A DNA stretch of 64,000 bases. It comes from Monocercomonoides exilis PA203 (lineage: Eukaryota; Protista; Preaxostyla). Under the pieces are notes generated by a model that saw only the letters and a program-made list of their open reading frames with translations, did no database searches and was not told where the DNA came from. Below are positions 1 through 32,869 of this stretch, one piece after another (positions within the stretch are counted from its first letter, which is position 1; each line of letters begins with the position of its first letter). The stretch is from the NCBI GenBank assembly GCA_001643675.2, contig LSRY02000021.1, positions 496,001 to 560,000 on the forward strand, written 5' to 3'. The position numbers were made by a program, and so were the translations under genes.

Positions 1-1324
1 GCATCAGCAGCAGCAGCAGCAGAGGAAGCGAGACCTGCAGAGGCATGGAGAGGGAAAGGGTTTCCTGCGCAGAGTGCGCGGATGGTGGAGGGGAGATACC
101 CAGGCGATGTGGCAGTAGCAGGAGCAGGAGCAGGCAGAGGAAGAGAAAGGAGCGAAGAGAGAGGGAAAGAGAGAGATTCAGCGAGTGGAAGAGAGCTTCT
201 TTTCTCTGTCTCCTCGCTGGCTGCACTTGAGGCCGCGCCTGTCACCATTGGAGGATCACCGTTCACAACCATCTTTCCAATCATGAAGCCGCAAAGGACG
301 ACATCTGGTGCGTCAGACTCATCCAACATCTCTTCTTCTTCTTCTTCTGCAACGGCTGCTGCTGCTTCTTCTCTTTCTGGCTCGAATTTCCTGTCTCCCT
401 TCAGAGACCGTTCAGCTTCTTCGACGCCATCCTTCCACATCCGCTCCATCGCTCCGCAGACACCCACACACGACTTGAGCACACCCTTCGCCTTCGTCCG
501 GCACACCATTCGTGCCATCGCCTCTATCTTCGCACTCAGCCTCACTCCACAAGCACCAAAGGGCTACCACCTTTTCTCCCCTACTGCCTCCTTCTCATCT
601 TCATATGTCTCTTCAAACTCATCCTTATCTACATCATCATCTTCTTCATCTTCTTCTGCTTCTTCTTCCACTCTTTCCTCAGACCGCTCTGCTGACGCCT
701 CGTCCCGTGCCCTCGCCCTCATCAACCCTCAGCAAGACCCCCTCCCTCCATACTCTTACCCAGCTGAGTCCATCTCTGTCTGGGCACAGCTCTTCCTCTT
801 CCACATCTTCCTCAGCGTGGCTGACTGCGCCGAATGGGCAGGCAGCTTCATCTTCTCGGTGCAGCCAGCTTGGAGCTGGATCGCAGCGTTTGATGCCATG
901 TGGCGAGGAAACAGGCAAAACCAGCTGTTCTCCTTTGATTCGGATGTCCAGAATGGAATCATTCCTCATCTGCCCTTTGAGGAGCAGCAGACAAGCAGTG
1001 TGGGTGCTTCTTCGTCGAATGCTGTGTCATTTCTGGCTGCTCCTGCACCAGCCACTGCTTCTGCTTCTTCTTCTACTTCTTCTTCTTCTGTATCACCACT
1101 GACTTCTCTGCCAACCTCTGCCTCTGTCGCATTTGCTGGCTATGTCGCTTCTCATTCACCATCATCTTTATCTGCTGCTTCTGCAACTTCGTTCAATGCA
1201 AATCAGTCTGCTTTCCCTTCGTCTCCTCATCAGTCTCCTTCAGCAAATAGAGTGGGTGTGCAAGCTATGCCTTCTCTTTCTCTTCCATTTGCTGTTGGCA
1301 ACACATCTTCTTCTTCTTCTTCTT

Positions 1325-1355
<31 letters not shown>

Positions 1356-4300
1356 GTCATCATCATATTCCTTATCTCCTCCTCCTCCTCTCCGTCTCTC
1401 CCATGACTTCATCGTGCCCCAGCGCTTCTCTGACATCGAGCTGCGTATCATCTCTCTCTTCGTCCCTTACTTCCGCAAGTGCCTCGAATACTTCATTTCT
1501 GCCCTCGGCCTCTTCACCCAGCATCTCTACGAGTTCTTCACAGACGATGCTCAGCCCACCCTCGTCCCCTTCCAGCTGACTGAGCCCTCACGCAACTTTG
1601 TCATCGCCAACCGCCCGTACACCTCCAGCGTCTCTGCTGTCCCCTCTTACCGCCCTTCCCCTCTCTTCAAGTCTGTCCTCAACGGCGGCGGTGTTGGTGG
1701 CATCTCCATCCCAACCCCACCAGCCACCCCTCTGCCTTCAAGCTCCCCTTTCCCCCGCTCTTCTCCTCAGACTCCTTCCATCATCGCCTCTGCTGCCTCA
1801 CCTGCTGCAGGAGTGGGGATACCTGCCTCTATCAGCGCCTCCACCCAGATGCCCTCTGTCTCCCCACCTCCACTCAAACACCAGCTCCCAAAAATGAAGC
1901 TGAAAGTGCCCTCAGAACGAGACTTCCTCATGTTCTGGGCGCGGCTCGCAGTCGCCGACTTCGCAGAAGGTGTCCTCTTCACCCGCACTTTTGACTCGCT
2001 CTGTACTGGCGTCTGCCCCAAATTCACTTTTGCTCCTTCTCGTTTTGTGTCAGCAGCGCAATATGAAGTGTTTCAGGGGATAAGCTCTTCGCCCAGCCCT
2101 TCTCTTTCGTTCGTGTTTCTGGTTGTTTCTATGCTGTCTTCGTGTCTTTCCTCAAACTTGGCCCAAAAATGCCCTTTGCTCACCACACACATCTTGTCTG
2201 TCATCCTTACTCTTCTCGGAAAAACGGAGAAATTTTGGCATCTTCTGAAGAAAAGAGAAGCAATCCATGCACAGCGGAAAGCTATTCCATTTGTTGCTCT
2301 TCTTCGCGATGCTCCTCTTTCGCCTTCGACATCACTGAGACTTCATCCTTCACGTGAGAATTCTCCTCCTCCTGCTTCTTCTTCTTCCTTTTCCTCCTCT
2401 TCTTCTTCTACTTTGCATTCACCTCCTTCCCAGCAAACTTCTTCATTCATTCCTCCTTTTGCTCTGCCTCACAGTCAATTCCAAACGGCCACAGTTGCTT
2501 CTGCAGTATCTACTGCTCCTTTTTCCTGCACCTCACATTCTCCTCCTCCTTTCCGCACGTCTCATTCTCGTTCTCCTCCACTTTATTCTTCGCATCTTCC
2601 ATTGTCCGCAAACATCCGCTCTTTCTCTCCACCTCCTCGTCTTTCGCAGCCACCTCATCTGCAGCTTCAGCCTCCGACACATTCAATTCCTTCTTCTTCC
2701 TCTCATTCTGCTTCATCGTCTGCTTCTTCTTCCTCTTTCTCCTCCTCTTTCTCTTCTTCATTCTCTGCTTTGAAATCAACCGAGCACAAACAAACAGCAT
2801 CTGAAATCTTGCAACCTCTTCTCGATTCTATCCTTCTTCATACAGCATCCTACATCCTCAACTCCAACAGCCCGTCCATCGTTGCTCGCTTCTTCAATCT
2901 GTCATCTGTGTTTCAGTATTATGTTGATGCTTATCCCTCTTTCACTTCATCCTCTTCTTCATCTTCTGTTTCACCATCTGAAGATAATAACAATTCTTCT
3001 TCTTCTTCTTCTTCTTCTTTCCCATTTGGATTCATTTCTCCATCTGATTTCTCTTCCTCCACTTCAAATACACCTTCTCTTCCATCTGTCTCAAAACTCC
3101 CTCACACTTCATCATCATCTTCCTCCTCCTCATCCTCATCCATGCCACTTCCTCCTCTTCCTTCTTCTTCTTTCCCTTTCTCTCTCCTCTCTCCCTCGTG
3201 TGTCTGGGCATTCATTGGCATTGTTGCTGCGAATGCCGGAAGAGCTCAATGGCAGCAGTTAGCTCGTTCATTTCCTTCTCAAACAGCTTCTTCTTCTTCT
3301 TCTTCTGTTTATTCACAAACACATTCTGAACAAGCTTCACTCAGCAACTTCGGTGTGCCACTTTCTCGCGCACAACCAGCTGTGCCTTCTGTGAAGACTG
3401 CAATTTCACCATCTATCTGTTTCAATAACAATAATAATAATAATAACATTGTCAGTAACAACAGCATAAACAACAAATATCCTTCCACATCTCCCTCACT
3501 TTCCCCTTTGTCTCCTGCAGCCACTCGACAAATCCCTTCTTTCTCTGTGTCTTCTCCTCCTTCTCAATCTTCCCCCTTTCCATCTCCTTCTTCTATCTCT
3601 TCTTCTCCAGCACACCCACCTCCTTCTCTTCAGCAACTTCTGCCTCAGCTTCCTCAGAACGAGTCTCAAATCGCGTCATCAAACAGCACATTCTTAGCAT
3701 CGTTCATTCGGATGATGGAACACAATGGCTGGTCTTCAGTGAAGACGGGTTGGGCCACAAAGAAGATTCTCATCCAGAGGCAGAACAAGGAGATGGCCAC
3801 GATGCATTCATCAGTGCAGTCATGCTTGGCAAGACTCAGTCGGCGTTCAGCACAGAAAATCCCGTACTGGTTTTGGGCAGACAACAAGTCAGAGAAAGCA
3901 GAAAGGGCAGAAAGAGCAGAAAGAAGGAAAAGGTTGCAGAGGATGCAAAAGCAAGGCGGCCGATTGGGGAGAAGCAGCAGGTGGGCAGAGAGAGATGCAG
4001 TACATTCGCTTTCAGACAGGCAGTATGAATATCTCGAAGCAAAAGCAGAAGAAATGGAGCGCAACTCGTTTGCGAACCACTGTCTGACACTGCTCCGCTT
4101 CCATCTGCTTGTTCTGGTTGCATTGAGCCATCCAAATGAAACAGCATCAACATTTGTGGCAGCCCTGCTGTTAAAGTTGGCACACGATGCTGCGATGAAG
4201 GAGAACCCGTCAGAGGAAGATGCAATGCTGCAGCAGAATGTGAATCTGTTTCTGGTTGCATTTCAGGAGAAGAGGGATGCGGATGACGAGGAAGCACAGG

Positions 4301-7300
4301 AAATGAAAGGGGCAGGAGATGGAAAGAAAGGAAAAAACGATGATGACTCAGAAGAAGAAGAAGAAGACGATGGCGATGACGATGATGATGGTGACGAGGA
4401 AAGTAGTGGAGGCAGGACAAGAGAAGAGAGCGAGGCGTGGAGCCGGACGAGAGAAGACGAGACGACACGTTCAGACACAGATTTCTCAGACCAGCCAGTG
4501 TCTGTGCCTATCCAAGGGAAGGCATACAGATCGTATGGCATCTCCTCTGATCGCTCATCTGCCCGTTCGCTTTCTCAGACCTCGCTTTCTCCTTCTACAT
4601 ATGCTCCTTCAGCCACATCGATGACTGGAGTGACTGCAGACTTCGACGAAACAACCACCGCATCCTTTTCGGCGTCTGCAGGCTCCAACGAAGTTGTCAC
4701 TGTTTCATCGTATCGCAGCCTCTCTCCTTCGCAATCGCGATCGCCTTCGTATTTGAATGACTCCTCATTCCACTCACAAATGAGCTCAAGACACTCTGCA
4801 CAGACGATGTCGCCACCAGCCACAGCATCTTCTGTTATGAGTGGTTCTCGTGTGGTTAGACATTCAAAAGCTGTCAGAGGATCTTCATCATCATCATCTT
4901 CTTCTTCTTCATCCTCTTCCCGATCTGCTTCTGGTGCTTCTTCCAACAAGCATCTTATCCGAGGCAAAGATGCCAAGTTTGCGCAGTGGGCATCTGCCAC
5001 TGTTGCTTCTTATTTCACCTCCACCCTCGCCTTCCTCACTGAAACCACTCGAATTTCGCCTCAAAAAGTGATTGCGCTGAAGTCTGGTGCCACTTCTGCT
5101 GGCTCGTCTGTGCTGAACGAGAGGCAGAAAAGAGCACAGCTGCGCATCCAGAAGGCGCTGCGGCGCATTGAAAAGCAGAAGCAGAGGGAAGAGCTGAGGA
5201 CAAAAGCACTCAGAGACTGTCTGATTGGGCTGATCCTGGGCAATTCAGTGCTGATGAATGAGATGGTGACACTCGCACGCGATGCTGTCTATTCGCACCA
5301 GCGCTCGGCTCGCATCAAAGAAAAGCTGAGCAGCTTGGATGCTGTTGATGAACTGAATTTTGCATCCATATCGTCTTCCTCTTGCAATTTCAATGATCTT
5401 CTGCAGCAGCCTTTGACTTCCACATCTGCTTCTTCTTCTGCTTCTTCTGCATCATCTGCCCATCCATTCCCTGCCAACCATCCCACTCATTTATCTCCCT
5501 CTACTCGTTCTCTCTCCTCTGTCAGCTCAGGCAGAGGCCGTTCTCCTGCTCTTCCCTCCCTCCCTGCTCATCCTTCTCATCCAGAGCTAACCCTTCAGCC
5601 TGTGCCAGCATCTGCCCACAATTCCCCTCCAACACGAGGAAGCTCCAAATCTGACTCCCCTTCAAATGCATCAGCGTCTTCTCCACTGAGAGAGGTATCG
5701 AGTGAGACTTCACAGGAAAGGAAGCCTCAAGAAAGAGGAAGGGGAAGAGGAAGAGGAAGAGGGGAAAAGAGCTCTGATATTACTGGAATGAAGCAGAGCG
5801 GAAAGAAGAAGCCAAACAAAGATGAGAACGAAGAGCTTGTCAGACTCGCTGACGATGGGCGAGAACCGCTTTGCACATCGCTTTTGGGCTCATTCTTGTT
5901 TGAAGAAGAGATATTCTTCCCTCCAAAGAATATATTAGCTGAAATACGCAGACAACTACAACTGCACAAAGAAGAGCAGGCAGCCAGCTCGCCTGTGTCT
6001 TCTGCAACTGGATCTGTCCATGCTGTTCCTTCGACTCCTCTCTCACCTCCAGCTGACACCATCTCTCGTTCCTCTGCTCATTCGATGCAGAGTGGCTCTA
6101 ATAATACCAGAGCTGCCAGTGAGAGTGTGTTTCGCATTGCTCCGCTTTCCCCTCCTGTGCCTCGCTCTGCTCGAACATCCAGACCTCAATCTCAGTCTCA
6201 ATCTCAATCTCATTCACATTCTCATTCACATTCTCAGTCTAATTCTGTATCTCTTTCTCAGCCTCGCTCAGCTTCTCCTTCTTCTTCTTCTGTTTCTCCC
6301 TCGCGCAATTCTTCTGTCCAACCAAAGAACACCCGCAGAAACACAAATGCCTCAGCCTCTTCTGCTGCTTTCATTGCAAATTCTTCTTTTTCTGGTTCTT
6401 CTTCATCATCTTCATCATCGTCTGCTGTGAGAATCGCCCACATCTCTCCTTCTGTGTTTGCCTTCGTCTATTCTCTCCTTCCTCTCTTTCTGAGCCATCG
6501 CCATTTGCTTCGCTGGTCGCCTTCTTCAAACACAATACGCGTTCTCATTCGCTTTCTGCAGAGCAACAGCGCTGTCGGCTCTGCCATTCAGATGGGAAAT
6601 GCCTCAAAAACATCGAAAACTTCACGTATTGGTCGCTTGAATACTTCCTCTTCTTCTTCATATTCTTCTTCTCTTTCTACTTCCTCCTCCTCCTCTGAAT
6701 CTGCCTTTCTTCTTCCATCCTCTTTCATCTCCGTCACATCTCCATTATATTCATATTCTTCCTCCATTTATCCTCCTTCTCTGCTCTTCGAGTTTGCCAA
6801 GCGTTGCATCGATCTCTTTCTGTTTGAGTCTGCCCAGCTGTCTCATTCGCAAATGCTTCCTTTTCCCCCAAAATGGATACAGCCGTCTCCTCAGCCCAAT
6901 ATGACTCCAGGTGATTCTCCTTCTTTTTCTCCTTCTTCATTCTCTTCTTCCTCCTCCTCCTCTTCCGCTTTGTCTTCTTCTGTCCAAACTCCTCCTTCCA
7001 CCCCTTCCTCAGCCACTCCCTCTGTTGCCAGCCATTTCTCATCCAGCCCTGTTCTTCTGCCTCCTTCACACATCTTCCCTTCGTTTGCTCAGCAGAAGCA
7101 GAAGTTGCATCTTCTCATTTCGCCTTTGAAACAGCTGGCGTTGGTTGTGGCACTTGTTGACTTGTGCATTTCTGCTTTTGCAGCTGAAGAAGCGAGAAAG
7201 AAAAGAAATTCGTCAAACAGAATTGAAAGTTATAACATCACAAGAGAATACAATGGAAGAAGAGACAGATGGAGGACGAAGTCAAAGCAGCCAATTCTTG

Positions 7301-10300
7301 CCATTCATGAAGTCGAAAGAAAGTCTTCTTCTTCTTCTTCCTCTTCCTCTTCATCAGAGCACAACCCAATTCAAAATGCCTCACTTTCATCGATTGTGAC
7401 TGTGGAGCAGCTGTCTTCGTGGATTCTGTCTATTCTGATGAAGATTGATCTAAACTCTTTCCCACTCGCAATGCCATCTGCTCTTTCTGCTGTTCAGATG
7501 ATGAAACAAAATAAAAATAAGAATAAGAATAAGAACAAAATTAAAAGCAGTGACAAAAATGAAAGTGAAAATGAAGGCGAAAGCACTTATGTTAGTTTCC
7601 ATTCAGAGAAGGAGAAAGAAAAGGAAGATATTACTTCGATTGGGCTAAGTTTGAGAAGCTTTGGAGTGTTAGGCGGAAATAAAAGAGATGAGGCAAAAGG
7701 AGAGAATGAAAAAGAAATTGATGAAATTGTGAGCAGTGAAGATGGCAGTGACACTGATGACGACGATGAGAATGATGACGAAGATGAAGATGAAGCTTTG
7801 CTTCTGATGAATCAAACAACTTATGCATCTTCTTCTTCTTCTTCTTCAACTTCATCATCATTATCTTCTTCTCTTTCTGAATTGGCTTCTCGTATTCCTT
7901 GCACTTTCCTTTTAACTCTGAATGACACATGCAAAAGAGCATTTGTTGTTGGCCATCGCATCAGAATTATGCTGTCTCGTGATTGGAATCAGTATTTTGC
8001 CTCAAAAAGTTCATATTCTTCGTATTCTTCTTCCTCCTCCTTTTCTCCTTCTTCTTCTTCATCTTTCACTTCTTCTTCCTTGCATGCTCCCTCTCTCATG
8101 CCATTTGATGGTGGTTATTCGAGCTATCCTTCGTCATATCTGAATGGTTATCAAAATTCTTCATCATCATCAGCCTCATCATCGCTTTCTCTGTATTCTT
8201 CAAGCAGCACATTGCAATATCAGCAATCTTATTCCCCTTTTTATTCTCTTCTCCATTGCGCTGCTCTGCTTATCACACCACAAAAGCATGTTCCTTCTTT
8301 GACCCAGTTGAAATCGTTATCATCGTCACAATCTTCTTTGTCTTCTTCTTCTTCGTTGTCGTCTTCTTCTCTTTCTCTTCTGTTCACTTTCCCCTCACTC
8401 GATGAAATCAAATCCCATCTCCATTTCCTCTTCACATCCAATCACATGTTAGCTGCCCTCCGCTTGCTCCAATTTCTTTCTCATGTTGTCTCTTCTCAGC
8501 TCATCACAGAAGACAATACAAGCTCATCTCATTTCTCATCTTCTGCTTCTTCTCCTTCCTCCTCCTCCTCTTATTCTTCTTCTTCTTCTTCAACAGCATC
8601 ACTCTCCACATCAGATACTTCCCATCTTCTGCAACAAGACACAGAAATGATCCCAATTAGCAGCACTTCTTCCACTCCTCCCCTCTCTCTGTCTCATTTG
8701 AATTCAAGTTCTTCTTCCTCCTCTTCCTCTTCCTCTTTCATTCAATCGATCGAGCATTCCCTTTCCTCTCGTCTGCGCTCTTCCCTCCTCTTCCCTCAGC
8801 TCCGCAGCTGCTTCGAGTATTTCTATTCTGTTGCACCTGATCTCATCAAAGAGATGGAAGACGTCTCCTCCACCCTCCTCGTCTACACCGTGCCTTCTGT
8901 TCCCCTTGCCCCTCCCTCAGAATCATTGAAGTTTTCTTCTTATTCTCTCTCAAACTCTGCCTCTGCCAGTCTGCCTGCTGCCTCTTTGCCTTGCCCACCG
9001 TCTATCACTCAGTCTATTTCAGCTGCTGCTTCGTCGATTCTGTCAACAGCTGCCTCCTTCTTCCAGGCAATCTTCCCGCAGAAGAAGATTAAAGAGAACA
9101 TTCTATTGAACTCGTTCTGTATTGGCATTTCGACTGATTTGGAGTGGAAGAAGATGGTCGCATTGACTGATGGATGGAGAGACAGGCTGAAAGAAGACGA
9201 AGAAGACGATGCGGAGAATGCGGAGTTGTTGTGCAGTGAAGATTGGGATGTGGTGGCGAAGCAGAGGAAGAAGATGTATTCGAAGAAAAGAGCATTGTGG
9301 AAGAAAGTGGTGGATGAAGATGGCAAAGAAGAAGGAAAAGGAGGAGGAAATATTAACAGATTGTTCTTCTTGAAGGAGAAACATAGCGAAATCGCCTCCG
9401 AAAGAGAATGGAACAAAGCATCGCGTATTGTCCAAGCAGAAGCAGAGCATCTGAAAAGAGAGCGGTTCAACATGAATATGCCAATAACGCCACCTTCAAA
9501 GAACATCTCCAGAATTTCGTCTGCTTCTTCACTCGCAGCAAACTTGTCATCTTCTGCTGATCATGTGTCTGGCACGAACACCAGCTCACCTCAAAACAAT
9601 GGAAAAGAAGTGAATGCTGCTGAACATTTTCCTTCTCCCTCATCATTTGCAATTGGATCTTCTTCTTCCTCTTCCCCTCCTCCTCTAACTGACAAGCCTT
9701 TCTTTTCAGTGGGTGTTTTGCTTATCTCTTTTCTGTCTATTCCAAAATGGCATCAATCTCCCATCTGGCTGTCTATGATGGATGCTCTTTGCTTCTCGTC
9801 TTTGAGTGTTGTGGCTGAATGCAACCAGATTGTGAAAGGAAAAAGAAGATCATTCAGAAGAATATCGTCGGGTTATCTTTCTTCTTCTTCCTTTTCTTCT
9901 TCTTCTTCTTCTTCAGAAAGATTCATTGGCCATTCACCATCACTTGCAGATGTGCTGTCCAATCAGACTCATCCGATGCATTTTGAAGGGTGTGGAGTTG
10001 TCGATATGGTACTTCCAGTGTTACTGGACAAGATATTTGAGGAAAGATTGAATGATCAAAAGAGAGATAAAGCGAGAGAAAAGGAGAAAGAAAGTGAAAG
10101 AGAGAGGGAAAGAGAAAAAGCATTACGAGCAGATGGATTTGCAAAAGCGGAAGAAGATTCACATGAAAACAAAACAGAAAACAAAGAGGAAGCATTTAAA
10201 GTGGGCATTTTGCAGTATTTGTTCACGAAAGAGCTGAAATGGATGAAGAATGTGGCAATTCAATATCCATTCCTATTTATCTCTATTCTTTCCTCTCTCA

Positions 10301-13300
10301 CCTCTTCCTCTCTCTCTGCTCATCCTTCTGTGAGTATCAGCCAAAGCACAGCTGAGCTCATTCCACAGCAGCTTCAGCTTCATCAGCAGCAGAACTCACC
10401 TTCCTCTCCTTCTTCCATTGCATCGCTGTCTCCTTCCCAGTCCTTCAGCCATCCACATAACACAGCAGAGCAATCAGTCAGAAATATTCCAAATGTGTCA
10501 AATGTATCAAATGTGTCTTCATTGCCAGCATCGCTTTGTGTGTTCATTGCCAATTTCATCATCGACAACTGCTTCCCCAACAGCCATCCACTCAACGTGG
10601 CTCATCCGCTTCTTCTGCACTTCTTCCTCATGTTCCTGACTGAAGCTCAACATCGCTATGATCTTGCATCCTCTTCCTCTTCATCCTCCTCCTCATCATC
10701 ATCTTCTTCTTCTTCTTCTTCTCTAATCAGCCCCTCTGTCAAGAAAGTCCCCTCCTCTCTATCTTTTCTACAATCCATCAATTCTGAGCACACGATGCCT
10801 TTCTTCTACTCTCCCGATGAGTTCTATCAACAGCTGCGTTCTTCTATTGGCACAAAAGCCCTATCAAAAGTGTCTGAAGCCCTCAAAAACTGGACAGAGG
10901 CGGTGCAGTTTATGAGAGACGAGATTAAAAACCAGCTCGATTTGCTGCTTCCCCAGCCGCTTTCACCTGCTTTCTCGCCAATTCTGTCAATGTCCCCAGA
11001 TTCATCACCATTGCAATCACCTTCTTCTGTTTCTGCTTCTTCTTCTGCTACTGCTATGTCTGGTTCAGCTTGCAGATTCGACTCATTTTCAGCAGTCAAT
11101 CCAAATGATGACTTTCAAAAGAGCATGTTTAAGTCTCTCTATTCTCCTTTGACTTCTTCTTCTCCTTTGTCTCCTTCCTTTGCGTATTCTGCTGTTCCTG
11201 TGCCAACTGCCCCATCTGTCAAAGCCAAACCTTCAGGTCCTTCCTTCTTCCCTCTGATTGAGCAGCCTTTTGCTCTCCTGGCATCTCCCCAGACTCCTTT
11301 CACTTTGTCATTCTTTTCACTCTTCTTTCCTTCAATCAACACTTCTCGACAGATCCCCCGTTCACTGAATGCTATCGTGTCGTCACTGCAGGCAGAAGTC
11401 GGTTATTCTTCTTCCTCATCGTCGTCTTCATCGTCGTCTTCTTCTTTTCAGCCTTCTTCTTCAAAATTGCGTTATTCATCCACACAAAATCAAGCTTCAT
11501 CATCATCATCTTCTTCTTCTTCTTCTTCTTCTTCTTCCACTTCTTCTTCTATTTCCTTTGGCTCGACCTTCTCCTTCCCTTCCTCGTCTGTCGTCTTCAA
11601 GCTGCGCCGCTCCTTCCACATTGCTTTCCTCCAAATCGCCCAACAGCACCTCGACCATCTGCTTTGGGAGTATCGCTCTATAAAGTCCATCCTTCTTCCT
11701 TCTCTTTCTTCTCTCTCTGCTGTTGCCCAGTCTCCCAGACAGCCTTCCTCCCCTTCTGTTCAGGAGCTCATGTCTGTCCACTCTTCCTCTCCTGTCGCAT
11801 TTGCTTCCTCCTTCCCACTTCCTGCTCCTTCCTCTCTGCTCTCTTCTCCTTCCTTCTCCTCCATCTCCTCGCCTTCTTCCCATCTCTCATCTCCCTCTCC
11901 CTCTGCCTCTCCCACTAGCTTCATTCACTCACAAGATAACTGGTTCCACTCATCCATGGAGCAGTCACTCCTTCTCTTCCCCCACATCGCCCTTGCCCAC
12001 CGCTGCGTCTGGCATCCGCTGTATGCTGACTGGCTCATGCCCCTCTTCCTCGTCGGCCACGTCAGACCTCTTTCACAGCCCCCCTCTGAGTATTATGCTC
12101 TGCTGGCTCGTAAAGGGCACAGAAGCAGCGGGAATTCGTATTGGAGAGAGAGTGATAGAGGAAGGAGTGGTGATGTGTTTGTTGCTGCTGATGATGATGA
12201 AGAGGAGGGAAACAATGATTACTTTGAGATGGCTACAAGAGATGCCAAACAAGCTGCAGCTGTCAGAGTCAATCTCGATTCCTATCTCATCGACGATGAT
12301 CACATTGCTACTGACTCATGTGCATCCACTGCTCCTCTTCCGCAAAAATCTTCCTCCTCCTCTTCTTCTTCTCTTGCTGTTCCTTCTCTCTCCACTCCAA
12401 CTCCTCCTTCCTCTCCTGTCTCTCCCTCTCTCCGCAGCGACTCTTCTGTCACAGCTGAGTCCACCACCACCCCCAGCACCGACTCTTCCTCTCTCCGCAC
12501 TCAAGTCTTTGCTTCTTTTGCTCAATCCTCTGTTGCCTCTCAGGCTGCAGCCACTGGCTTGATTGTTCCCCTCCCTTTCACCAACACTCTCCCTCTATTC
12601 GATCTCGAATCGCTGACTGAGCTAGACTCGGGAATGCGAGTGCACCACACAACACTCGCAAACTTTGTGAAGCAGGTGCTGCAGCAGGTGCCTCTCATTG
12701 AGTCCTCTTCGATCATCCAATCCGCTGCACAACAAGGAGGCTTTGCCCAGTCTCCAATGGCACCGGCGATGGATGGCACTCCCTCTGTCTTGTTGCAGAG
12801 TGTACAGCCAGCCACGCCTATCAGGAGAGACAATGCGCATCTGTCGCACATCCGGAGCCTCTTCACCATCACCCAGACGTCCACACAGAAGCCGGTCAAA
12901 TGCAAATACCTCATCCCACAGCATGTGGTGCGTGCTGCCTCGAAGGAAGCTGGAGGGTTCTTGTCAGGAGGAGGAGTGGGAGGAGGAGGGAGAAATGGAA
13001 TTGGGTTTGGAGAAGATGGAGATGGAAACGATGGTGCAATGATTCTTGTGCCGTCTCAGAGGTGTTGTGAAGAGACGATTCTGATAGCGAACATTCCGAG
13101 TGTGCAGATGAGCAGCGCCCACAGCGCAGCCTGCTCCACTCTGCGCTCTCTGCGACACCAGGCAACAGTCTCTGCAGCTGATCTGGTGTACCCCGCCAGC
13201 CTCACTCACATGGCAATATCGCTGCTGCATCTGAAGATTATCGTGCACAAGTTCCGCAAGCTGCTCTCAGACATTGCCAACAACAGCGGTGCAACGGAGC

Positions 13301-16300
13301 ACGACAAGCGGGCGAAGACCAGCCAGACGCGGAAGGTGATTGAGAACTGGATTTACTACTCGCTCGCAGCATACGGCACGTTCCTCGAGCAGACAAATGA
13401 CTTGAGAGCTGCTAATTTATTCAGATCGACGACGAATTCACCTTCAAACCGCAGAAGGCGCAAGGCCACGTTCACTGGGCCCTCAAACACAAGTTCATTG
13501 AACTACTCCACAAACTTTGCTTCTTCTCCTTTTGCCTCTGCTTCTCGCTCGTTTCAGGTCAACATCTCACTCGTGGCTGCGATGTATGAAGAGACCATTG
13601 CCCTGCTGTTCACCCTCGTTCCGCTGGCAACATACAACATTCAGGAAGAGATTGTCCGTGCTATCTTGTCAAAGCCTTCCATTTCTGTCTTTCTTGCCAA
13701 CTTCCTCGTGCCGCACCAGCTGTCCCTCACAAACTGGCGCAGTTTGGCTGACACTGCCTTCAAAAACGTCTGCAAAAGCCTGATGTCGTCCTCTTCTTCT
13801 GTTTTGGCCTCTTCTTCGGGCTCTTCTCTTTCTTCGTCTGTTGCAGCTTCACCTCTGCCTTCTCCGCCAGCCTCACCTCCACCAGGGCAGCAAATATCGA
13901 CAGAGTTCATCTTCTCCACAGCATTTGCCCCTCATCCAGCAGATGGCTTGACATCAACTCCTGCTATTTTTAACTCTTCATCATCTTCTTCTTCCTCTTC
14001 GTCAACTTCTTCTTCCTCCTCCTCCTCTTCTTCTTCTTCTTCTTCAAGCGTGTTAAGTGCATCAACCATTGTATCAACCGAAAGGAATTCTCCGCCCATT
14101 GTCATCCATCCTTCAATGGCTGCATCTGCCCCCTCTCAATTTCGCCAGCAGCAGCAACAGCAGCAGTCAATGGGCATATCTCCCTCGCCAGGTGTTGCTC
14201 TTCTTCCAGCCCACACTCACATCGGAAGCTCCTCTTCTTCTTCAACTTCTGTTGCCACCGTCTCCAGCCTGTCTGCTGCTTCTACCCTTCTTCTCGCATT
14301 TGCCGCGTCTCAGGAAGATTCCCAGCTGACTGTGGTGATGCGAAAGTTCATCAACATTCCGCTTGTCTCCATCGGAATCGCCTTTCGCGAAGAGTTCAAA
14401 ACCAACCGCTTAACCGTCGTGCCTATGCGCCCTCCTCCTTTCTCATACTTCGCATCTGCCAATAGCTCTTCATCATCGTTGTCTTCTCTCGATTTGCGTA
14501 CAACCACTTCTGTTTCTCTGCCTCATTGTTCTCTTTCCTTCATCCCATTCTCCTCCTTCTTGTTACCGAACTCATATTCCTCATACACACTGAAGCCGAT
14601 TGTGCAGCTTATCTTCAACTGTCTGGCGTATCTGCATTCGATGGGAGCTGACTACTTCATCACAGCTGGACAAAGCAACTATGTGAGCGACAGTGACACC
14701 ACTTCTGCACCAAGTGCACAGAGCCCTTCAGGAACTGACTCAACTTCCAATGAAATCGGAAGCCAGAAGAGCAAAGCTGCATCGTTTGCCTCCTCTTCGC
14801 GTCTGCCGCAGTCTCGCTTCAGTGGAGCAGGGGATGAGAACGAAGAGCTAGAGCGCATTCAATCAACAGACATTTATGCATCACAACCACGCAATGTCGG
14901 AAGCACACCAGCAAGTGGAAGAGGAGTTAGTGATATTTCACAATCTCCTCCATCCAGCCAGCAGTCAACAGCAGCATTGGCATCGTTGCAGAGCTCCATC
15001 CGGGTCATTGTCACAGAATATCCTTCGTATGCTGCCAACACATTCATCCGAATGCTCCAGACGATCTTCCAGCTGCAGCACTACGACAACACTGCTGCCA
15101 TCCGCTGTGCCACTGCCTCAATTGAGCAGAAGAGGCCTGTCGGCTGCAATTCGCTTCCTCTGCCCTTCCATGGCTTTACTTCACTCTATCCATTTATGCC
15201 CACGCCAGGACAGCAGGCGTGGCTCGATCTCATCGACATCACATGCAACCAGCTGGTGAGCAGCTCTGTTTATTCGATGATGTCTCCCTCAGACACTGGC
15301 GATCAGTCAAGCAGCGACACCCACAGCAGCTCATCCATGCTGAGAAAGGCATCAACAGGCTCGTCTTTCTCCTCCACGTTCTTTTCCAACGTCAACCCGT
15401 ACATCTCTCAGTCTTCCTTCTCTCCGCTCATCTGGCTGGCACTATCTTCTCAGGTGCTGCACCTGCCTCGCCTCTTCTCGTGCAATGCGTTTGTTCCATT
15501 CTCACCAGGCGGAAAGGAGTTTGCGTGGGATCTGAACGGAGTGCTGTGTCCATCAATTGTCATTGTGGCTGGGCTGCTTGAGGTGGCTGATGCACTCAGC
15601 CAGCTGAGGTGGCCGTATTGGCGCGAGGGAAAGATCAGCGGAGAAAAAGATGGAAAGGATGAGGAAGAGATGAAGTCGAAGATAAACGCGAAAGTGAGGA
15701 TTAAAAGAGATAGATGGACTTTGATGGCGTTAGCATCGCCGGAGCAGCAACATGAATACTATGAAAACTTGTACGAGTCAACTAAAATCAGATTCAGAAC
15801 ACCCAAACCGAAAGAAGAGAAAGAAGAAAGAAGCACAACCAATCGAAGCGACGGCTCTTCTCCTTCCTCTTCTTCGCCTCCAGACACAGCAGAGTCTATT
15901 CTTCTGGCGCAGCAAACGCCACATGCGCTGAGTCCTGCGCATCTGAGGGGCATCTCCACATTCATCAAGCAGTGTATCTTGCAGCTTGTTCGCTTCATTC
16001 CCTCGCAACCTCCGCTGTCTGACACGACCATCAAGGACTTGTCCTACCTCGGCTACTCCAACACATCAAGGCCGCTAAAGAGAGAAAATACAGAGAATGC
16101 AGACAACACACCAAGAACAACAAAAACAAAGCATTCAAAAGGAAATAAGAGAAGGAAGAGGAGAAGATCGCTTGGTTCGTCTTGTCATTCTTCGTCTTCT
16201 TCTCCTCCTGCTCCACGCAACACATCTCCAACTCCTTCGTCAGCCACCCAGATGGTTGCCAAAGAATACAGAAGAGAGGCGAGGAAGACGTTGTTGGAGT

Positions 16301-19300
16301 ACAGAAAGAAAGAGAGAGAGAAAAGAGAGCAAGAAAAAATGAAGGAAAATTTGACAGGAGAGGGACAAGAGGATAATAATGCAGAAGATGGGGCAAATGA
16401 GGAAAGAAAATCATTAGCAGAAAGAGGAAGGAGCGAAGAGCAAAGGAGAGAAGACACAGAAGCAATTGAACAGAGTGAAGAAGAGGAAGATGATGAAGAA
16501 GAAGATGAAATGTCTGATCAGTTATCTCAGAAAGAAGAGGATGAGTTTCTCCGAGTAAGAGATCTAAGTGCAGAGAGAGAAGAGAAACTGAGAAGAGAAG
16601 CAGAAGAAAGAGAAGAAAGAGAAGATGATGATGAACGGGATGAAGGAGATGAAGGAGATGAAGGAGAAACCAATGAAATAGTCGAAGAAGTAGGAAAAAG
16701 CAGAAACAGAGGTCGAAGTGGAAGTCGAAGTCATTCAGGTGAAGAAAACGAAGATAGCAAAGAAAGAGAAGACAGCAGAGAACGAGACTCTGTTTTGGAT
16801 CGTATTGACTTGACAACAGAAGCAGAAGAGCAGCAAAAAGAGAGCGAAACAGAGAAAAAACGCAAAAAACACAAAAAAGGGAAGGGGAAAGGGAAAGGGT
16901 CAAAGAGCAAAGAAGAAGCAGCAGAGGACGAAGAAGCGAGGAAGAAGCGAGAGAAAGAAATCGCCGACTACAAAGAGAACGTGCGAAAGCGGAAACTTGC
17001 CTTCCACCCGCAGGTTCTGCTGGAGCTTGTGTTCCATTGTTATTCTCCGCTCATCTTCCCATCGCCATACTGCTCTTTTGCCTCGTTCATCCAGGCCACA
17101 TCAGCTGGAAGATCGTCTCAAAGCGACAAGAAGTTCATGCGCTCTCACATGTCGCCTTCTCCTTCTGTTTCGCAGCAGTACGAATCATCTCCATCTGCCT
17201 CTGCCTCAGCTTCTGCATTGCCATCTTCGTCAGCCTCACAATCAGCAGCAGCAACAAGCTCAGAAACAACCCAGATGCCTTCGCAGTCATTCGACGGAGA
17301 GATCAACATGTCTGTCTTTGACGAGCCAGAACAAGGTGGCTTATCTTCCTCTTCTTCTTCTTCTTCCACTTTTTCCTCTCCCAATTCACATCTGACTGCA
17401 TCCCATTCAACAGATCTGATCTTATCTCAATCTGCTTCATCAACCTCTTCTGCCTCTTCCTTCGGCGAGCAGGCCTCGTCACTTCCATCTGTCGCACAGC
17501 AATTCGACCGGTCGGGTTCGCAGCAGTCCATTCGCACAGCCCACTCGCTGGGTGTCTCTGCTGGTTTATCAGACTCCTCCAACGACAACACAGCTGCCTC
17601 TCTGTCTGCTGAGACAACACGTTCTTCTGATACAAAGGCAACCACAGCAAGCACCACAACCACCACAACGACAGCCAACATGGTGTATCATTCGTGTGCA
17701 TCAATACCGCCTTCTGAGCAGTCAGCAGACACATCTGCGTATCATCCAATGCCCATGTGCATCCCTTCTTTCCCTTTCTCTTCAGAGGCAGATGGTGGTG
17801 GATGCATTACGCAGATCATGCAGGACTGTGCTGAGTGCATCTCAGTCATTCTGAAGAAGACGAACGAGAGAGAAATGAGCGAGATCCTGTGGAGGACAGA
17901 GCTTGAGGCGCGCGACAAGGCTGCTTTTGATGCTGAAAACTACATTTCTGACCTGCCGTTAGAGATCATCCTGGCTGAGCGAGAGAAGAGGAAGAAGCTG
18001 AAGAACTCAGATTTCAGCTGGGCTTCTCAGCTGCTGACTTCAATGAATTCACACGGAAAGAGCACACGCCGTTCTACTTCAAAAAAGCCCATTTGGCAGC
18101 AAGCTCCGCTTCCTTCGACTGTCTCGTCGCTGTTCACAACCATCCTCTTCTTCTACAACAACCTTCTCGAATGGAACGCCTTCAGTATCTCGGGATTCCC
18201 TCTGATGCAGTCAACACAGTACAACATGACTGTGGTGCGCTCCACGTGTGCGTTCCCCTTCCATCTGTATGTGACTGAGCTCTTCGCCAGACTGCCCTGG
18301 AACCTCTGGCAGCGCTTCCCTCCCTTGCTGATCGCCCCGCTGCTCAACATGGCCATCCGCGAGTGGTCCATCTTGGGTGAGTCCTTCCGCAAACAGAAGC
18401 TGGCGCTGCTTGCATCGCCTGCCCAGTCTCCGCGCCCGTCTCCTGCTGCCTCGCCGATGCTGTCTGAATCTCCTGCTCCATTTGTGTCTGGCTCTTCTTC
18501 TTCTTCTCAGAATGGGCCTTCTCTTATAATGGTACCTTCCCAGGTTATTTTCTCGGCTGTTCCGCAGACTGCCATCTCTCTTCATTGCCTGATCCCTCAG
18601 ATTGCTCTGCAGATCAGCTGGATTGACGCAGTGATTGGCATCGATGGCAAGCAGAGGAACGAGCAACTGATGCAAAGAAGACGAAAGCAGAACGAAGTTC
18701 TGTTTGAGACGCCTGTCACACTGAAAATTAAGCCACCCGAAAAGGAGCTGATAGCAATGCGTGAACAACAAGAGGAAGAAGAGAAAGAAGGAGCAGACAT
18801 CAGAAGTCAAGTTGATGAGACTGAGATATTCATCAAGGCAACAAAGGCAGCTGCATCCAAGTCGCGAGCCACGCTAACAGAAACCGCGTCAACTTGTTCT
18901 CTTCATTCAGACTACACAAACAGAGAGCAAATAACAAATGTGGATTATTCACTAAGTGAACAGCAGGCACCCACAATGAACTCACTCACTGTTGATAGAG
19001 ACCGTGCTGGAGACGACTCAAACACAGACAGATCACTGCACACAGAAACGCAATCAATGGCAACTTCTATCAAAGACCCATCACTCACGAGCATTCCTCC
19101 TCCATACTCTTCTTCTTCTTCTTCATATCCAGTTCAGCCTCCTTCCCCAGCAATCACTGAATCTGCTTCGCTGAATGATCCAACTTCCCAATTTACAGAT
19201 CTATCGCAGCTGCCTCAGGAAGAGCGTATCAAAAAGCTCTCCTTCTACGACGACAGCGCCACAGATGATACACACACCTCCATCTTCACTGGCTCCCCCG

Positions 19301-22300
19301 AAGCACAGCAGCAGTATGCGGTGTGTCTGTCCTCTCTGATTTCCCTCCTCTTCCTGTCTGCCGCAGAGACAGTCACATTCCCCATCCCGAAGCACACCCT
19401 CCAGCGCACCCCAGCCTCGTGGCGTCTCTTCTTCTACTTCCGCTTCAACCTCCGCCAGCTGTCCTGGATCCCTTTCATTGTTCTGTCTGTTCCTCAGCTC
19501 AAAGCCGGTCTCAGCTGGGTGCTGTCTCTCTTCCACCCGCCGCGCTCACTTAGCTCCTCGTCGCGCCCAACAGACGCTCTCCGCTTCTGCTTCAACTCAG
19601 AAACAGAAGTGAACGAATTCGTAGCTCTCGCTGACAGGCTCGCTTTCCTCATCTGTGTGGAGCCTGAAGGCACAGACCAGCTGTGGCGCTATGTGAAGAG
19701 GAAGAAGCTGCCAACAGCAACACTGATGATGGAAGACGACTACGACGATGATGATCTCGAAGAGCTTGCCAAAATACACGAAGAACAAGAAGATCCAAAT
19801 GCTGCTGCTACTTCTTCTGAAAAGGCTGAGAAAGACAAACTTCATTCTGATTTTGATTCGGATGATTCCGATGTAGAACCACTGATCAATTCTTCGTCTT
19901 CCTCTTCTTCTTCTTCTTCAGACGCAAATGCTGCATCGTCAGTGTTTGATGATCCTCCACCTTCATCTCCCAAACAGGAAACAGAAGAAAGCGATGTCAA
20001 CGAGCCAACTGCTTCTGTCCAACTGCAAGCTTTTGCAGCCAAAATCCTCACAGTTGACTTCTGTCGCCTGCAGCTGTACTTCTTCTTCACGTGCTCTTTA
20101 CTTGCCACCCGCTTCACCCGCCGTGTTCCTTTGACGGAGTCTGCGCACGGCATCAACTACTTCATGTCTCCCAGTGCATTTGCAGTGACTGCACATCTAA
20201 AAAGACTCTTCTTCATCATCCAGCTCATTCAGATTGGGAGGCCTTCCCCTCCAAGGAGAAAGCTGAATGCTCTTCTGAAGGCACAAAATGGAGAGTACGA
20301 TAGCTTCGACGAGACAGACAGCGAGTACAGCAAAGAAGATTCAGACAGCGACGAATTCGACGAAGAAGACGATGTGCAGCTCGCACTGCAGCTTGTCCTT
20401 CCCTTCCAGCTGCGCCGTCCGCCCGAAGAGAACACGCCAGTCGCAATCAGAAGAAGACACAGCGTGCATACAGTCTTACTGCTGCGGTACTTGTTCCAGG
20501 GATACATCACATCGATGCTGTTCTTCATCGATCTCTTCTCTTACAAGCAGGCACTGCGCTCAACCACAGAAGCAATGCATTCGGGAAGGCATCGGGGCAA
20601 CTCGTCGCCTTCTGTTTCGTTCATCCCCACCGTAGCTCGTTCCCCTTCGCCGGACAAGCAGGATGCTCCTGTTGTCCAGATATTCTCTTCGTCTTTGGCT
20701 TCGCCTCCGTCCTTCCGCAGACTCCACATTGTATTTTTCTTGACTCTTATTTCGCGTTTATTTGCTTCATTCACCCGCCCCAATCAGTTCTTTTCTGTTG
20801 TTCAGGCCGCTCTCGTGGCTATTCTTTCTTTCATTCATATTTCATACCACACACGCACTCACCAGCACCAGTTCTTCTCTGGCTCCACGCAAACATCCGA
20901 TCCTCCTCCTTCTCCTCTCTCTTCTCCTGCTTCGCTTCCTCGCAGTCAGAACTCCTCTCCCCTCACTGTGCCAATTACGCTGATTCCGTCTGTGTTTCTG
21001 CTGGAGTTCATTCTCTCTGTCTCTGTCAGAGCCAAACCCCCGCCTCTCCCTGCTGACATGGGCCCATTCCCTTCGAGAGTGGAAACTGAGCTAAACAAAG
21101 TGCTCGATGACGAAAAGAAAGAAGGAGGAGGTATCACTCCAAATTCACGGGGAGGCAAAGATGTCAGACGAGCACATGCTTCTGGAGACAGAAAACAGAC
21201 TGAGGATTCTGATGACGAAGACGATGAGCTTGCAAAGAAAGAAAAACAAGGTGACAAAGCGGAACAAACTTTTTCCGATGAGCTTGCAGAAATCTACGAC
21301 TCGTACAAAAACTACATCACTCCATTACCCTTCAGCGAGACACCATTGGTGTCTTTCAGGGATCTGATTGTTGCCTTAACTCCTTTCATCCGTGCTCTTT
21401 TCCTTTTCTCCTCACCAGCTTCTGACTTTGCCCGTGCAAGCTTTTCGGCTGCAACAAGCTTCTTCAGCCAGCCACCCTGGAGTGGTCGTCACTCAGCAAA
21501 CCCTTCCTCCTCTCCTTTCCCAATGTCTCCAACCTCTCCTTCTGGCAAAGGAGGCATTACTTCTTCTGTATCTCCTGCTGCTGCTCTTTTCCAGTCTGTC
21601 GATGCATCCAGCGACCAGCCGACAAACGCAGAACTCGAGCGAACAGGTGCCCTTCTTCCGACTTTCCTGGCTGCGTGTGCCCAGAGATCTTATTTCCTAT
21701 CCATGTCCTTTGTGATCCGCTCTTTCCTGCCTCTTCTTCTTCCAAGCACGTATGTCTCGTCTATTTCTCTGTCTCAGCTGTCTCCTTCGCTCACCCCATT
21801 GTGCCAGAGCATGACTCTTGCAGATGCCTTCAACATCTTCCAGACAATGGACTGCTCATGCTACTCAGACTTGCGGAGGCCGAGCCTGTTTCGCACCCAT
21901 CTGTCACACAGCCCCGCAAGTGCTGCTGTTATGATGCAGACATCCTCCAACTCAGTTGCCCCTCCATTGCGTGATTCAACTCCATTCTCTGCACGTATTC
22001 AAGATCTTCCTTCGTCTTCTTCCTCTGCCATTCTCAACTCCATCATCAGCACCCTCGCAGCGTCGGCGTGCTTTGAGGTGTTTTTAACCGACCAGTCGCG
22101 AGAAGTGGAAGCGATGCCGCTTCTGATTGATCTGGCGGTGCTGATGATCTCCTCTGAAATGAATCCTCAGCTGTGTGAAATCCTGTCAAATGTCTTTGTT
22201 TCTGTTTTGTCACTTGTCGAATCGAGACATTTCTGGCAGAAGAAGATTCCTATTTCAAGACCTGTCCGGATATTCATGATGGTTATATTGGCGTTTGTCA

Positions 22301-22763
22301 GCTATCACTGGCAAGATGCTGTTGAGATGAAAGAAAGTGAAAGCAAAAAATATTCAAAGGTGTGATAATTAGCATTTTTTAAAAATGGATTAGGCATCTC
22401 TTCTTTTTTCTGATTTTATTTCATTTTCTTTTATTTCAAATTAATTTCAATATTTCTAGACATATCGAATGCTTATTGAAAAGCTCAAAAAGCATAGCAA
22501 ATCACAGAAAAGCGCAACTTACAAAGAAGTCCTAGCTTCAATTAAGCACACAATTAAAAAGTATGATGTTCTTATTTTTTATGTTTTAAGTCATTATCTT
22601 TCTAATTCAACGTTCGCTCTGAAATTGCTTTTAATATTTTAATTTTTAACAAATTTTACAAAGTTCTGACAATTCGCAGATAGCAGGTAACTTGTCGAGC
22701 ATTGGTCAATCGCTCTTTCCCGAAAATGCGAACATATTTCGTTTTTCTGATGATTCATATTAA
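1..22763 (+). CDS. EPG5: Giant EPG5-like (ectopic P-granules autophagy protein 5) homolog with massive low-complexity insertions; 5' end lies upstream of the window
   Basis: The frame is open from base 1 to 22359. GT-AG introns at 22360-22459 and 22561-22663 then give the C-terminal exons TYRMLIEKLKKHSKSQKSATYKEVLASIKHTIKN / SDNSQIAGNLSSIGQSLFPENANIFRFSDDSY* (TAA 22761-22763). Collinear blocks resemble EPG5 as I remember it: ILSKPSISVFLANFLVPH (~13660), FARLPW (~18285) followed by QISWIDAV (~18610), KKIPISRPVRIFMMVILAFVS (~22240) and a terminal LFPE. Coding status is near certain; the family call is from recall. Confidence 0.65.
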
Positions 22764-30374: not shown

Positions 30375-30864
30375 TCATTGCGAGTTAGAAGAAAGAGAAG
30401 GAGAAGGAGAAGGAGAAGAATAGCGTGGAAGAGATGTATCAGACGAAGGGGTGCATGAAGGAGAGAGTTGGGGTGTGGATGAAGGCGAATCTGCAGCTTG
30501 TTGAGCAGCCTCAGCAGCAGCACTGGGAGAACTTGGTGTTGCTGGTGGATCTTTCGCATTGAAGTCACATTTTGAAGCATCAGAAGCAGAAGCAGAAGAA
30601 GAAGAAGAAGAAGAAGAAGGTGTGACTGATGTTGCATTAGAAGCAACATCTTCAGTTTGATTTTCTGTTGATTTGTTGGATTGATCATTAGCAACGGCAT
30701 TTTCTGTGTTATTCTTCTTTCTCAATGGTTCCCTTCTTGCTTTGAGCACTGGTGGATCACCCATTGGCCACATCGGCCCAAGTATTTCTTCCACATCCAT
30801 CGAAGACACAAGAGAAGATGATGCTTCATTCCCAGATGATGCTAACAAAGAAGGAGAAGAAGAA

Positions 30865-30900
<36 letters not shown>

Positions 30901-32869
30901 TGCTGTCCTGTCTGATGTAGTGCTTGCCTTCTGCCTGACAGCTGCTTCAAGCATTCATCCAGCGACAGAAATGTTTTCATAATGTGATCTTCGTCTTTTT
31001 TGATCTCTTCTGCTTCCATTTCTGGAATCTCCGAGAAAAACGTGTTCTGATCCGGGATGTTGTAGCACGTCACTCTTCGATTCGCTGGCAGTGTCATTTC
31101 AATAGGCGACAGCAAATCCAGTCCAAAGTTCATCTTCCACCTGCCCTCTGGATGGAAGATGCGTTCTTCATCTGTCCTCGGAACAGGGTCAAAATGGAAA
31201 AAGCGCTGCCTCCAGCCCTTCTGAGCATCCTTTCTCATCTTCGCCTTCTGCCTCTCTCTCACCTCGACTGTGATCTTCTCTTCCTTTGCCGTGTCGTAGT
31301 CCATCTTCTGCAGCGCTTCTGTCAGTTTCTGCCAGACAACACGCGACTCACAGGGCTGCTGGTGGGGCAGCGCCAGTGTCAGCTTAGAGAGATAGGGCGA
31401 GTGCTGCATTGAGAAGAAAACAAAGGTGTCCAATGGAAGAGAGGAAGGCAGAGGCTCTAATGTGGCTGATTCACTTGCTGATGCTGTGGATGATGAGGAG
31501 GAGGATGATGATGATGATGTTTTTTCTTCTTTCTCTCGTTTTTTCTCTTCTAATTTTTCTTTCTTTCTTTCCGATTTCTCTTCAGCTTTCTCTTTCTTTC
31601 GATCAGCTTTCTCTTTTTTCTCTCTGTTTTTCCGCTCCTCTTTCGTCTCTTTCGATTCTCTTTCTTTCCTAAGCTCGTTTTCTTTGTCATCCTCACGCCA
31701 CTTTTGATGCATCTGGCTCTGAATTTCAGCATATTCTGCTGGAACAGCGTATGAAACAGGGGTACGATGGTCAACTGCGAATGATAAATCTGTCCAGTCT
31801 CCACTCGCTGTAATAATAGGTCCTTCTTTTGGCCATGTTTCTGAGCCAGGAACTTTGGAGTAATCTCCTTTCCATCCTTTTATCCGCTTTATTTTCATTT
31901 CAAATTGATTATACTTCCCTCCAAATGTGGGCTTGGCAAGAAAGTTGAATTTTGATATTAATCCGGTTTGTTGGCATTGAATGAAAGTCTTTCCAACTGT
32001 CTCCATTCGCATTTTCCCAAAGAGAATTCCACGAGCAAGAAATCCAGGATACTTCAAGCAATATGTCTCTCTACGTTGCAGAAGATGTGCAAAAATGGTA
32101 CCAACCATATATGTTCCCACAGTATTTCCGGAAAAGCTTGACTTTGCTCTCATGTGACCCTCAACAACATATCCTCCATCAATATTTTCAAAATAAAATG
32201 TAGAAATTGGAGGGTGATGAGAGACTTGTTCGGAAAGATACCATGTTCTCGTTCCATCGGGATGATCCCAGTAACAACGGAAAAATTCTCCCAGTGTAGG
32301 ATTGTAAGGCTTCCTCACTTTTCTTGTTCTAATATGGAATCCAGAGAGGAAAAAGCGAGAAATATGAGTTAATCTATCAACAGGATCGTCCAAAGTGAGT
32401 GCATGACGAAGTATTTCAAGATGGGAAAAAAGATTTCCTGTTGACTCAATAAAAGATTTTGATTCACAAATGAATGCAGGCACTATTATTTTTTATGACA
32501 AAGGTATCGGAATATTGCGAAGCTTCATAAATTTCACGATATACAAAAAAGTGCACACATGTTACTCTTGTCAAATCCATTCCAAAAGTGACTTGCTTCA
32601 TAAGATCCATAAAAATGCTTCTTGGTTTTTCATCAAGCACTGCAAAAAGTATGAAAATGAAAAACTTAATGATTTTGTAGTGCACACCTTCTTCAGGATC
32701 ATAGACAGCCTTCATTGTAAGTTTATCTTTTTCCGAGTCATCTGCAATCAGAGCAGTCGAATCATCTTTTGTTTGTATCATTAAAAAATTCAAATAATAA
32801 TTCGGATTATTGATTTTCCTTAATTTATAATTTTCGGAAAAGTTAACCATTATAACTTATTGATGACAT
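30375..32869 (-). CDS. Oxysterol-binding protein-related lipid transfer protein (short ORD-only, Osh6/7-ORP5/8-like) with charged and Ser-rich insertions
   Basis: OSBP signature EQVSHHPP, KPYNPTLGEFF, GMDLTRVTLPAFICE (split by an intron), ESRVVWQKLTEAL and EKITVEVRER. The 5' exons are approximate. Confidence 0.9.

Follow-up and report, generated by a model that had tools for sequence, protein, structure and literature searches.

A giant three-exon gene of Monocercomonoides exilis

The window analysed here is a stretch of 64,000 nt from the genome of the oxymonad Monocercomonoides exilis (G000:C16:496001-560000). It begins inside a giant gene on the forward strand, which an earlier note, made from the DNA sequence, had read as an enlarged homologue of the autophagy tether EPG5 in a non-animal protist. 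The description of the host holds. The element is one real protein-coding gene with three exons and a product of about 8,053 aa, since an open frame of 24 kb is impossible by chance and the protein is conserved in a relative, represented by the protein P0001 and its contig L004 (see below).

According to the reading-frame scan of the window, no stop interrupts frame 1 between base 1 and the TGA at 22363-22365, and the open reading frame (ORF) listed within the window is 82..22365 on the forward strand, 7,427 aa. The frame extends 1.6 kb further into the adjoining upstream piece, L002 (G000:C16:486001-496000), which adds 534 aa. Upstream, the last in-frame stop lies at L002:8273, and the first ATG follows at L002:8399, i.e. 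G000:C16:494399. The start of the gene falls into the 830 nt between the end of the upstream NOB1-like gene (L002:7570) and this ATG, and an additional small 5' exon may lie ahead of the ATG. Exon 1 thus has 7,987 codons in total (24 kb). Its window part, 1..22359 on the forward strand, shows about 40% identity to the relative over the last 1,500 aa. The earlier note had claimed a single open frame of more than 22.3 kb and more than 7,500 aa; this is borne out, and the frame turns out to be longer still.

Two small exons follow, and each of the three exons is in a different frame. Intron 1 (22360..22459, forward strand) is a GT..AG intron of 100 nt, AT-rich and in phase 0, with the borders AAG/GTGTGA at 22359/22360 and TCTAG/A at 22459/22460. 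Exon 2 (22460..22560, forward strand, 101 nt) encodes TYRMLIEKLKKHSKSQKSATYKEVLASIKHTIK plus a split codon. Intron 2 (22561..22663, forward strand) is again of the GT..AG type, 103 nt long, with the borders AAAAA/GTATGA at 22560/22561 and CAAAG/T at 22663/22664. Exon 3 (22664..22763, forward strand, 97 nt coding) ends in SLFPENANIF, followed by the stop TAA at 22761-22763. All searches and alignments were run exon by exon.

The contig of the relative runs without interruption through the C-terminus and can therefore be used as a test of the splicing model. Its tail is collinear across the site of intron 1. Exon 2 matches P0001 1190-1222 without gaps, straight after KKYKK, with a score of 36 against 19 for the second-best position in P0001; in a shuffle control, none of 20,000 shuffled sequences reached 36 (p<5e-5). 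Exon 3 aligns with P0001 1224-1248 (BLASTP E=2e-4), where SLFPENANIF pairs with LLFPDHANLF. The comparison with the relative thus supports both junctions proposed in the earlier note, 22359^22460 and 22560^22664, and the exon with the LFPE motif as well. It also supports the acceptor at 22663/22664, which restores a frame that matches the relative, over the alternative at 22679/22680, which leads to an immediate Lys-stop and loses LFPE.

It is very improbable that the locus is not one gene, i.e. that it results from an error of assembly or annotation, or from a long frame in biased sequence that joins several genes. Such an origin would be in line with the very uneven composition, in which the coding strand has a strongly negative GC skew. 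However, 7,987 codons are free of stops, the conservation with the relative reaches and crosses the spliced C-terminus, and the NOB1-like gene upstream ends 830 nt before the ATG.

The oxymonad-like relative and the conserved blocks

When the last 1,200 aa of exon 1 were compared exhaustively by phmmer with 1.84 billion representative proteins, P0001 (1,255 aa, E=1.5e-170) was the sole match. It originates from a Logan contig of 4,648 nt, L004, from run ERR12411199. Frame 1 of this contig is open from the first base, so that it encodes the last 1,517 aa of the orthologue. The source is most likely another oxymonad. No further oxymonad orthologues were found in two scans of the Joint Genome Institute (JGI) metagenomes.

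The identity between the M. exilis protein and the relative is 35% for P0001 (BLASTP) and 43% for the full L004 fragment (MAFFT). Between the conserved blocks, which are 39-52% identical, the linkers fail to align. The C-terminal part is of similar length in both, 1,517 aa in the relative and 1,500 aa in M. exilis, and the enlargement is therefore older than the split of the two lineages.

The best conserved region (18058..18765, forward strand) consists of the blocks 18058-18519 and 18532-18765, with 49-52% identity to the relative, and corresponds to the LPW and I.W..V blocks of the earlier note; several tryptophan residues and STCAFPFHLYVTELF are invariant. It is followed by a block with the pattern SPEAQQ…LSSLISL…LSW.PF..LSVPQLKAGL.W.L.LFHPP (19216..19746, forward strand), 47% identical to the relative. 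The last helices of exon 1 (22057..22326, forward strand) contain REVEA.PLL.D.AVLM and FWQKK.PIS, the latter being the K.P.S block; they are conserved, and the model of the relative has its highest, although still modest, predicted local distance difference test (pLDDT) scores here, 55-66. At the very end, both proteins have the motif LFP(D/E)xAN(L/I)F. The block IL....I...L..F..P, EEIVRAILSKPSISVFLANFLVP (13645..13713, forward strand), is present as described earlier and lies beyond the span covered by the relative. All the motif strings named in the earlier note were found where it had placed them.

Build and composition of the protein

The protein is a chain of hydrophobic blocks, each unique and most of them helix-forming, with long low-complexity linkers between them that are either Ser/Pro/Ala-rich or acidic. 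Serine makes up 20.7% of the residues, with 29 runs of at least six serines, the longest of 20. Low-complexity or hydrophobic-poor stretches account for 55-60% of the residues, and when they are removed about 2,200-3,600 residues are left as foldable. Internal repeats were considered as the source of the size and rejected: after masking, no self-matches were detected that would indicate a duplication of ordered blocks. The size thus comes from unique sequence plus linkers and not from duplication.

The part of the gene upstream of the window (L002:8399-10000, G000:C16:494399-496000) opens with ~235 residues that make up an ordered block without repeats, and an acidic stretch, TVTDEEDDEGIHHPESAFFPWITGF, comes next. 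By its position, this would be the place for one half of an EPG5-type thumb and for the loop with the LC3-interacting region (LIR) motifs. Within the window, a LIR-like core, WDVV (9244..9255, forward strand), comes after the acidic run EDEEDDAENAELLCSED and before a basic stretch of helix-like character. It is a candidate Atg8-binding motif, of a kind that is common in proteins.

Over window 1-22000, most 2-kb bins have a strongly negative GC and AT skew for the coding strand, the GC skew falling to -0.38. TCT provides 43% of the serine codons and accompanies the skew, along with other pyrimidine-rich codons.

Possible relationship to EPG5 and to other families

With hmmscan, neither the pieces of the gene, including the upstream N-terminal part, nor the relative gave a relevant match in Pfam, even at E<=10. 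The Pfam models searched did not include PF26103 and PF26573, two accessions guessed to be those of EPG5 families. Sequence and profile searches of the PDB returned noise only.

In our view the chance is even that this gene is an orthologue within the EPG5 family, highly diverged and enlarged about three-fold. We propose ordered counterparts of its blocks in human EPG5, including the N-terminal block, with a K.P.S block and a terminal L-Y-P-E, about 10 residues from the end, at similar distances from the C-terminus; we treat these matches as a lead, not as a test. Of the human sequence behind this comparison, residues 541-581 agree letter for letter with the published sequence (PMC12087653). 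The foldable count of about 2,200-3,600 residues is compatible with human EPG5, which was modelled over about 2,180 residues (270-2579 minus the loop 1391-1523; PMC12087653). The Pfam models of other giant helical proteins (DOP1, Tra1, HEATR5/Laa1, Mon2/BIG, Med23, VPS13-like) do not match, which we count in favour of EPG5. The earlier note had further proposed a check for the partners Atg8 and Rab7; Atg8 matches are found in the M. exilis genome (G000), and nine Rab7, nine Rab7-like and eight VAMP7 paralogues have been reported (PMC6759080). In all, the EPG5 reading is plausible.

Several results weigh against it, and none of the searches supports it statistically. The phmmer search described above returned, at E<=0.001, nothing that resembles EPG5 among the 1.84 billion representatives, with a query that did not include the best conserved block (18058-18765). 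We expect this library to include the EPG5s of animals. Three word-index searches of 5.8 billion clustered proteins, with the N-terminal block, the best conserved block and a two-sequence profile, returned P0001 only, from candidate lists that were probably swamped by poly-Ser words. The nearest neighbours by language model are generic helical-repeat families. AlphaFold2 gave a pLDDT of 44.0 for the N-terminal block from one sequence, and the model, at this level only, contains no beta strands. There is no unique counterpart of the tandem-LIR 41-mer of human EPG5 (541-581, from PMC12087653), and the best local matches to it are generic acidic stretches. The LPW and the V/I.W..V block named in the earlier note are in place and several tryptophans are invariant, but LPW reads VCW in the relative and is therefore not conserved between the two oxymonad sequences. 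Finally, the EPG5 motif matches of the earlier note and our own are not independent, and ours may have been primed by its motif strings.

The C-terminal domain of the relative was also modelled by AlphaFold2, from two sequences, with a pLDDT of 38.4; at these values both models are too poor for a fold comparison. An atlas fold search with the C-terminal model gave template modelling (TM) scores below 0.4 to unrelated repeat proteins, hits that carry no meaning with a model of this quality.

No similarity to EPG5 was thus found at the sequence-to-sequence level, at which the comparison was made (phmmer, word-index). We regard the negatives as weak evidence against EPG5, because the comparison was made at this level only and metamonad orthologues are often out of the reach of phmmer.

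The main rival reading is a giant scaffold specific to oxymonads or Preaxostyla with no homologue elsewhere, in which the EPG5 motif matches arise from chance and pattern-seeking, easy in 8,000 aa. It would account for a single relative among 1.84 billion representatives, 5.8 billion clustered proteins and the JGI metagenomes, for the lack of matches in Pfam and the PDB, and for motifs that are short strings, one of which, LPW, is not kept in the relative. On the other hand, unique hydrophobic blocks that are conserved over at least 1,500 aa and under purifying selection point to a folded protein of old origin, the foldable count fits EPG5, and the proposed motif matches are ordered, with the C-terminal ones at matching distances from the end. 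We find such a scaffold possible but rather doubtful.

A third explanation, suggested by the language-model searches, is a linker-inflated, divergent member of another giant helical-repeat family of trafficking or scaffold proteins (DOP1, Tra1/TRRAP-like, HEATR5/Laa1, Mon2/BIG, Med23-like). The nearest clusters are families of this type, COBRA1 (0.78) and Med23 (0.76) in the first search and Tra1_central (0.87), virilizer (0.87), Med23 (0.86) and DOP1_C (0.85) in the second, which covered named clusters only, so that an EPG5 cluster without a Pfam family would stay hidden. The AlphaFold models, weak as they are, also give the ordered blocks a helical appearance. However, all scores are below 0.9, few features are common (100-156 of 256), the families are unrelated to each other and the search itself marked the hits as probably wrong. 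Furthermore, Pfam models exist for these families and none match at E<=10. We judge this explanation unlikely.

A possible role in autophagosome fusion

We infer the EPG5 identity, and the tethering mechanism follows from that identity. In animals, EPG5 is a long tether made of helical bundles, which also binds R-SNAREs of late endosomes. Earlier work (Wang et al. 2016, Mol Cell 63:781; as cited in PMC10852212) established that Rab7-GTP recruits it to lysosomes and late endosomes, that it captures autophagosomal Atg8 via LIR motifs and that it stabilises the fusion SNAREs. Its architecture is described as hook, thumb and shaft, where two halves that lie far apart in the sequence form the thumb (coiled coil and beta sheet), and its tandem LIR motifs lie in a flexible acidic loop and bind Atg8-family proteins (PMC12087653). 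The 2025 structure paper deposited the map EMD-44835 and complexes with LIR peptides, with no full-length coordinates (PMC12087653).

If the M. exilis protein is an EPG5-type tether, Rab7-GTP would recruit it to late endosomes or lysosomes. There it would capture Atg8 on autophagosomes through LIR motifs, for which WDVV (9244-9255) is a candidate core, and it would promote or stabilise the assembly of the fusion SNAREs. Its three-fold size would then stem from linker insertions, as in many genes of this genome.

EPG5 has been described as metazoan-specific (PMC12087653, PMC10852212), and it is not among the autophagy genes listed for M. exilis (PMC6759080). A limited literature search returned nothing relevant on EPG5 outside animals. 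Whether this gene of a metamonad without mitochondria is a true EPG5 orthologue is, in our estimate, evenly balanced. If it is, EPG5 is not specific to metazoans and originated at or near the last eukaryotic common ancestor. It would also mean that the helical-bundle fold tolerates over 5,000 inserted residues of low complexity, a state common to at least two oxymonad lineages, and the gene would show, as a natural experiment, what amount of disordered insertion such a helical-rod tether can accommodate. Further, M. exilis, in which the Rab7 paralogues are unusually expanded, would have an additional fusion-specificity factor. Should the protein not be EPG5, the gene is still one of the largest of the genome, conserved among oxymonads and without an assigned function.

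Genomic neighbourhood

The neighbouring genes are ordinary and unrelated to the giant gene. Upstream lies the NOB1-like gene (L002:5715-7570, forward strand), with a zinc ribbon and long serine runs. Downstream, in the window, there are an oxysterol-binding protein (30375-32483, reverse strand) and a choline-transporter-like protein (54502-56619, forward strand), both ordinary neighbours, and a Glu/Lys-rich ORF of 1,596 aa (39406-44196, forward strand) without a Pfam match. Two adjacent ORFs at 47402-50573 on the reverse strand both match the family model of ubiquitin carboxyl-terminal hydrolase (UCH). The ORF at 48603-50573 covers the first 32 model positions and the one at 47402-48454 covers positions 9-140; the pair is probably a single ubiquitin-specific protease (USP) gene interrupted by an intron. 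Most long ORFs at window positions 23120-63912 contain 12-22% serine, so that the serine-rich filler seems to characterise this part of the genome and not one gene.

Comparison with known systems

A proposed likeness to EPG5 is an ordered series of short motif matches, from the N-terminal block to the C-terminal L(F/Y)P(E/D). Like EPG5 (human Q9HCE0, 2,579 aa; C. elegans EPG-5), the M. exilis protein is very large and apparently mostly helical, has no enzymatic domain and contains a similar number of foldable residues. It also has acidic loops with LIR-like cores, as candidates since such motifs are common, and the partners Atg8 and Rab7 are present in M. exilis (for Rab7, PMC6759080). Unlike EPG5, it is about three times longer, with 55-60% of its residues in low-complexity or hydrophobic-poor sequence. 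A similarity detectable by phmmer and a tandem LIR were not identified in it, and EPG5 is called metazoan-specific (PMC12087653, PMC10852212).

The CATCHR-type helical-rod tethers (subunits of exocyst, COG, GARP and Dsl1) are similar in being extended helical bundles that bridge membranes, and the shaft of EPG5 itself has been likened to them (PMC12087653). They differ in forming multi-subunit complexes of far smaller proteins, and the M. exilis protein has no Pfam or PDB match to any of them. Finally, the protein resembles other serine-rich, linker-inflated M. exilis proteins, with 12-22% serine and poly-Ser runs in most ORFs of at least 300 aa in the window. It differs from its neighbours in size, the largest other ORF in the window having 1,596 aa compared with 8,053 aa here.

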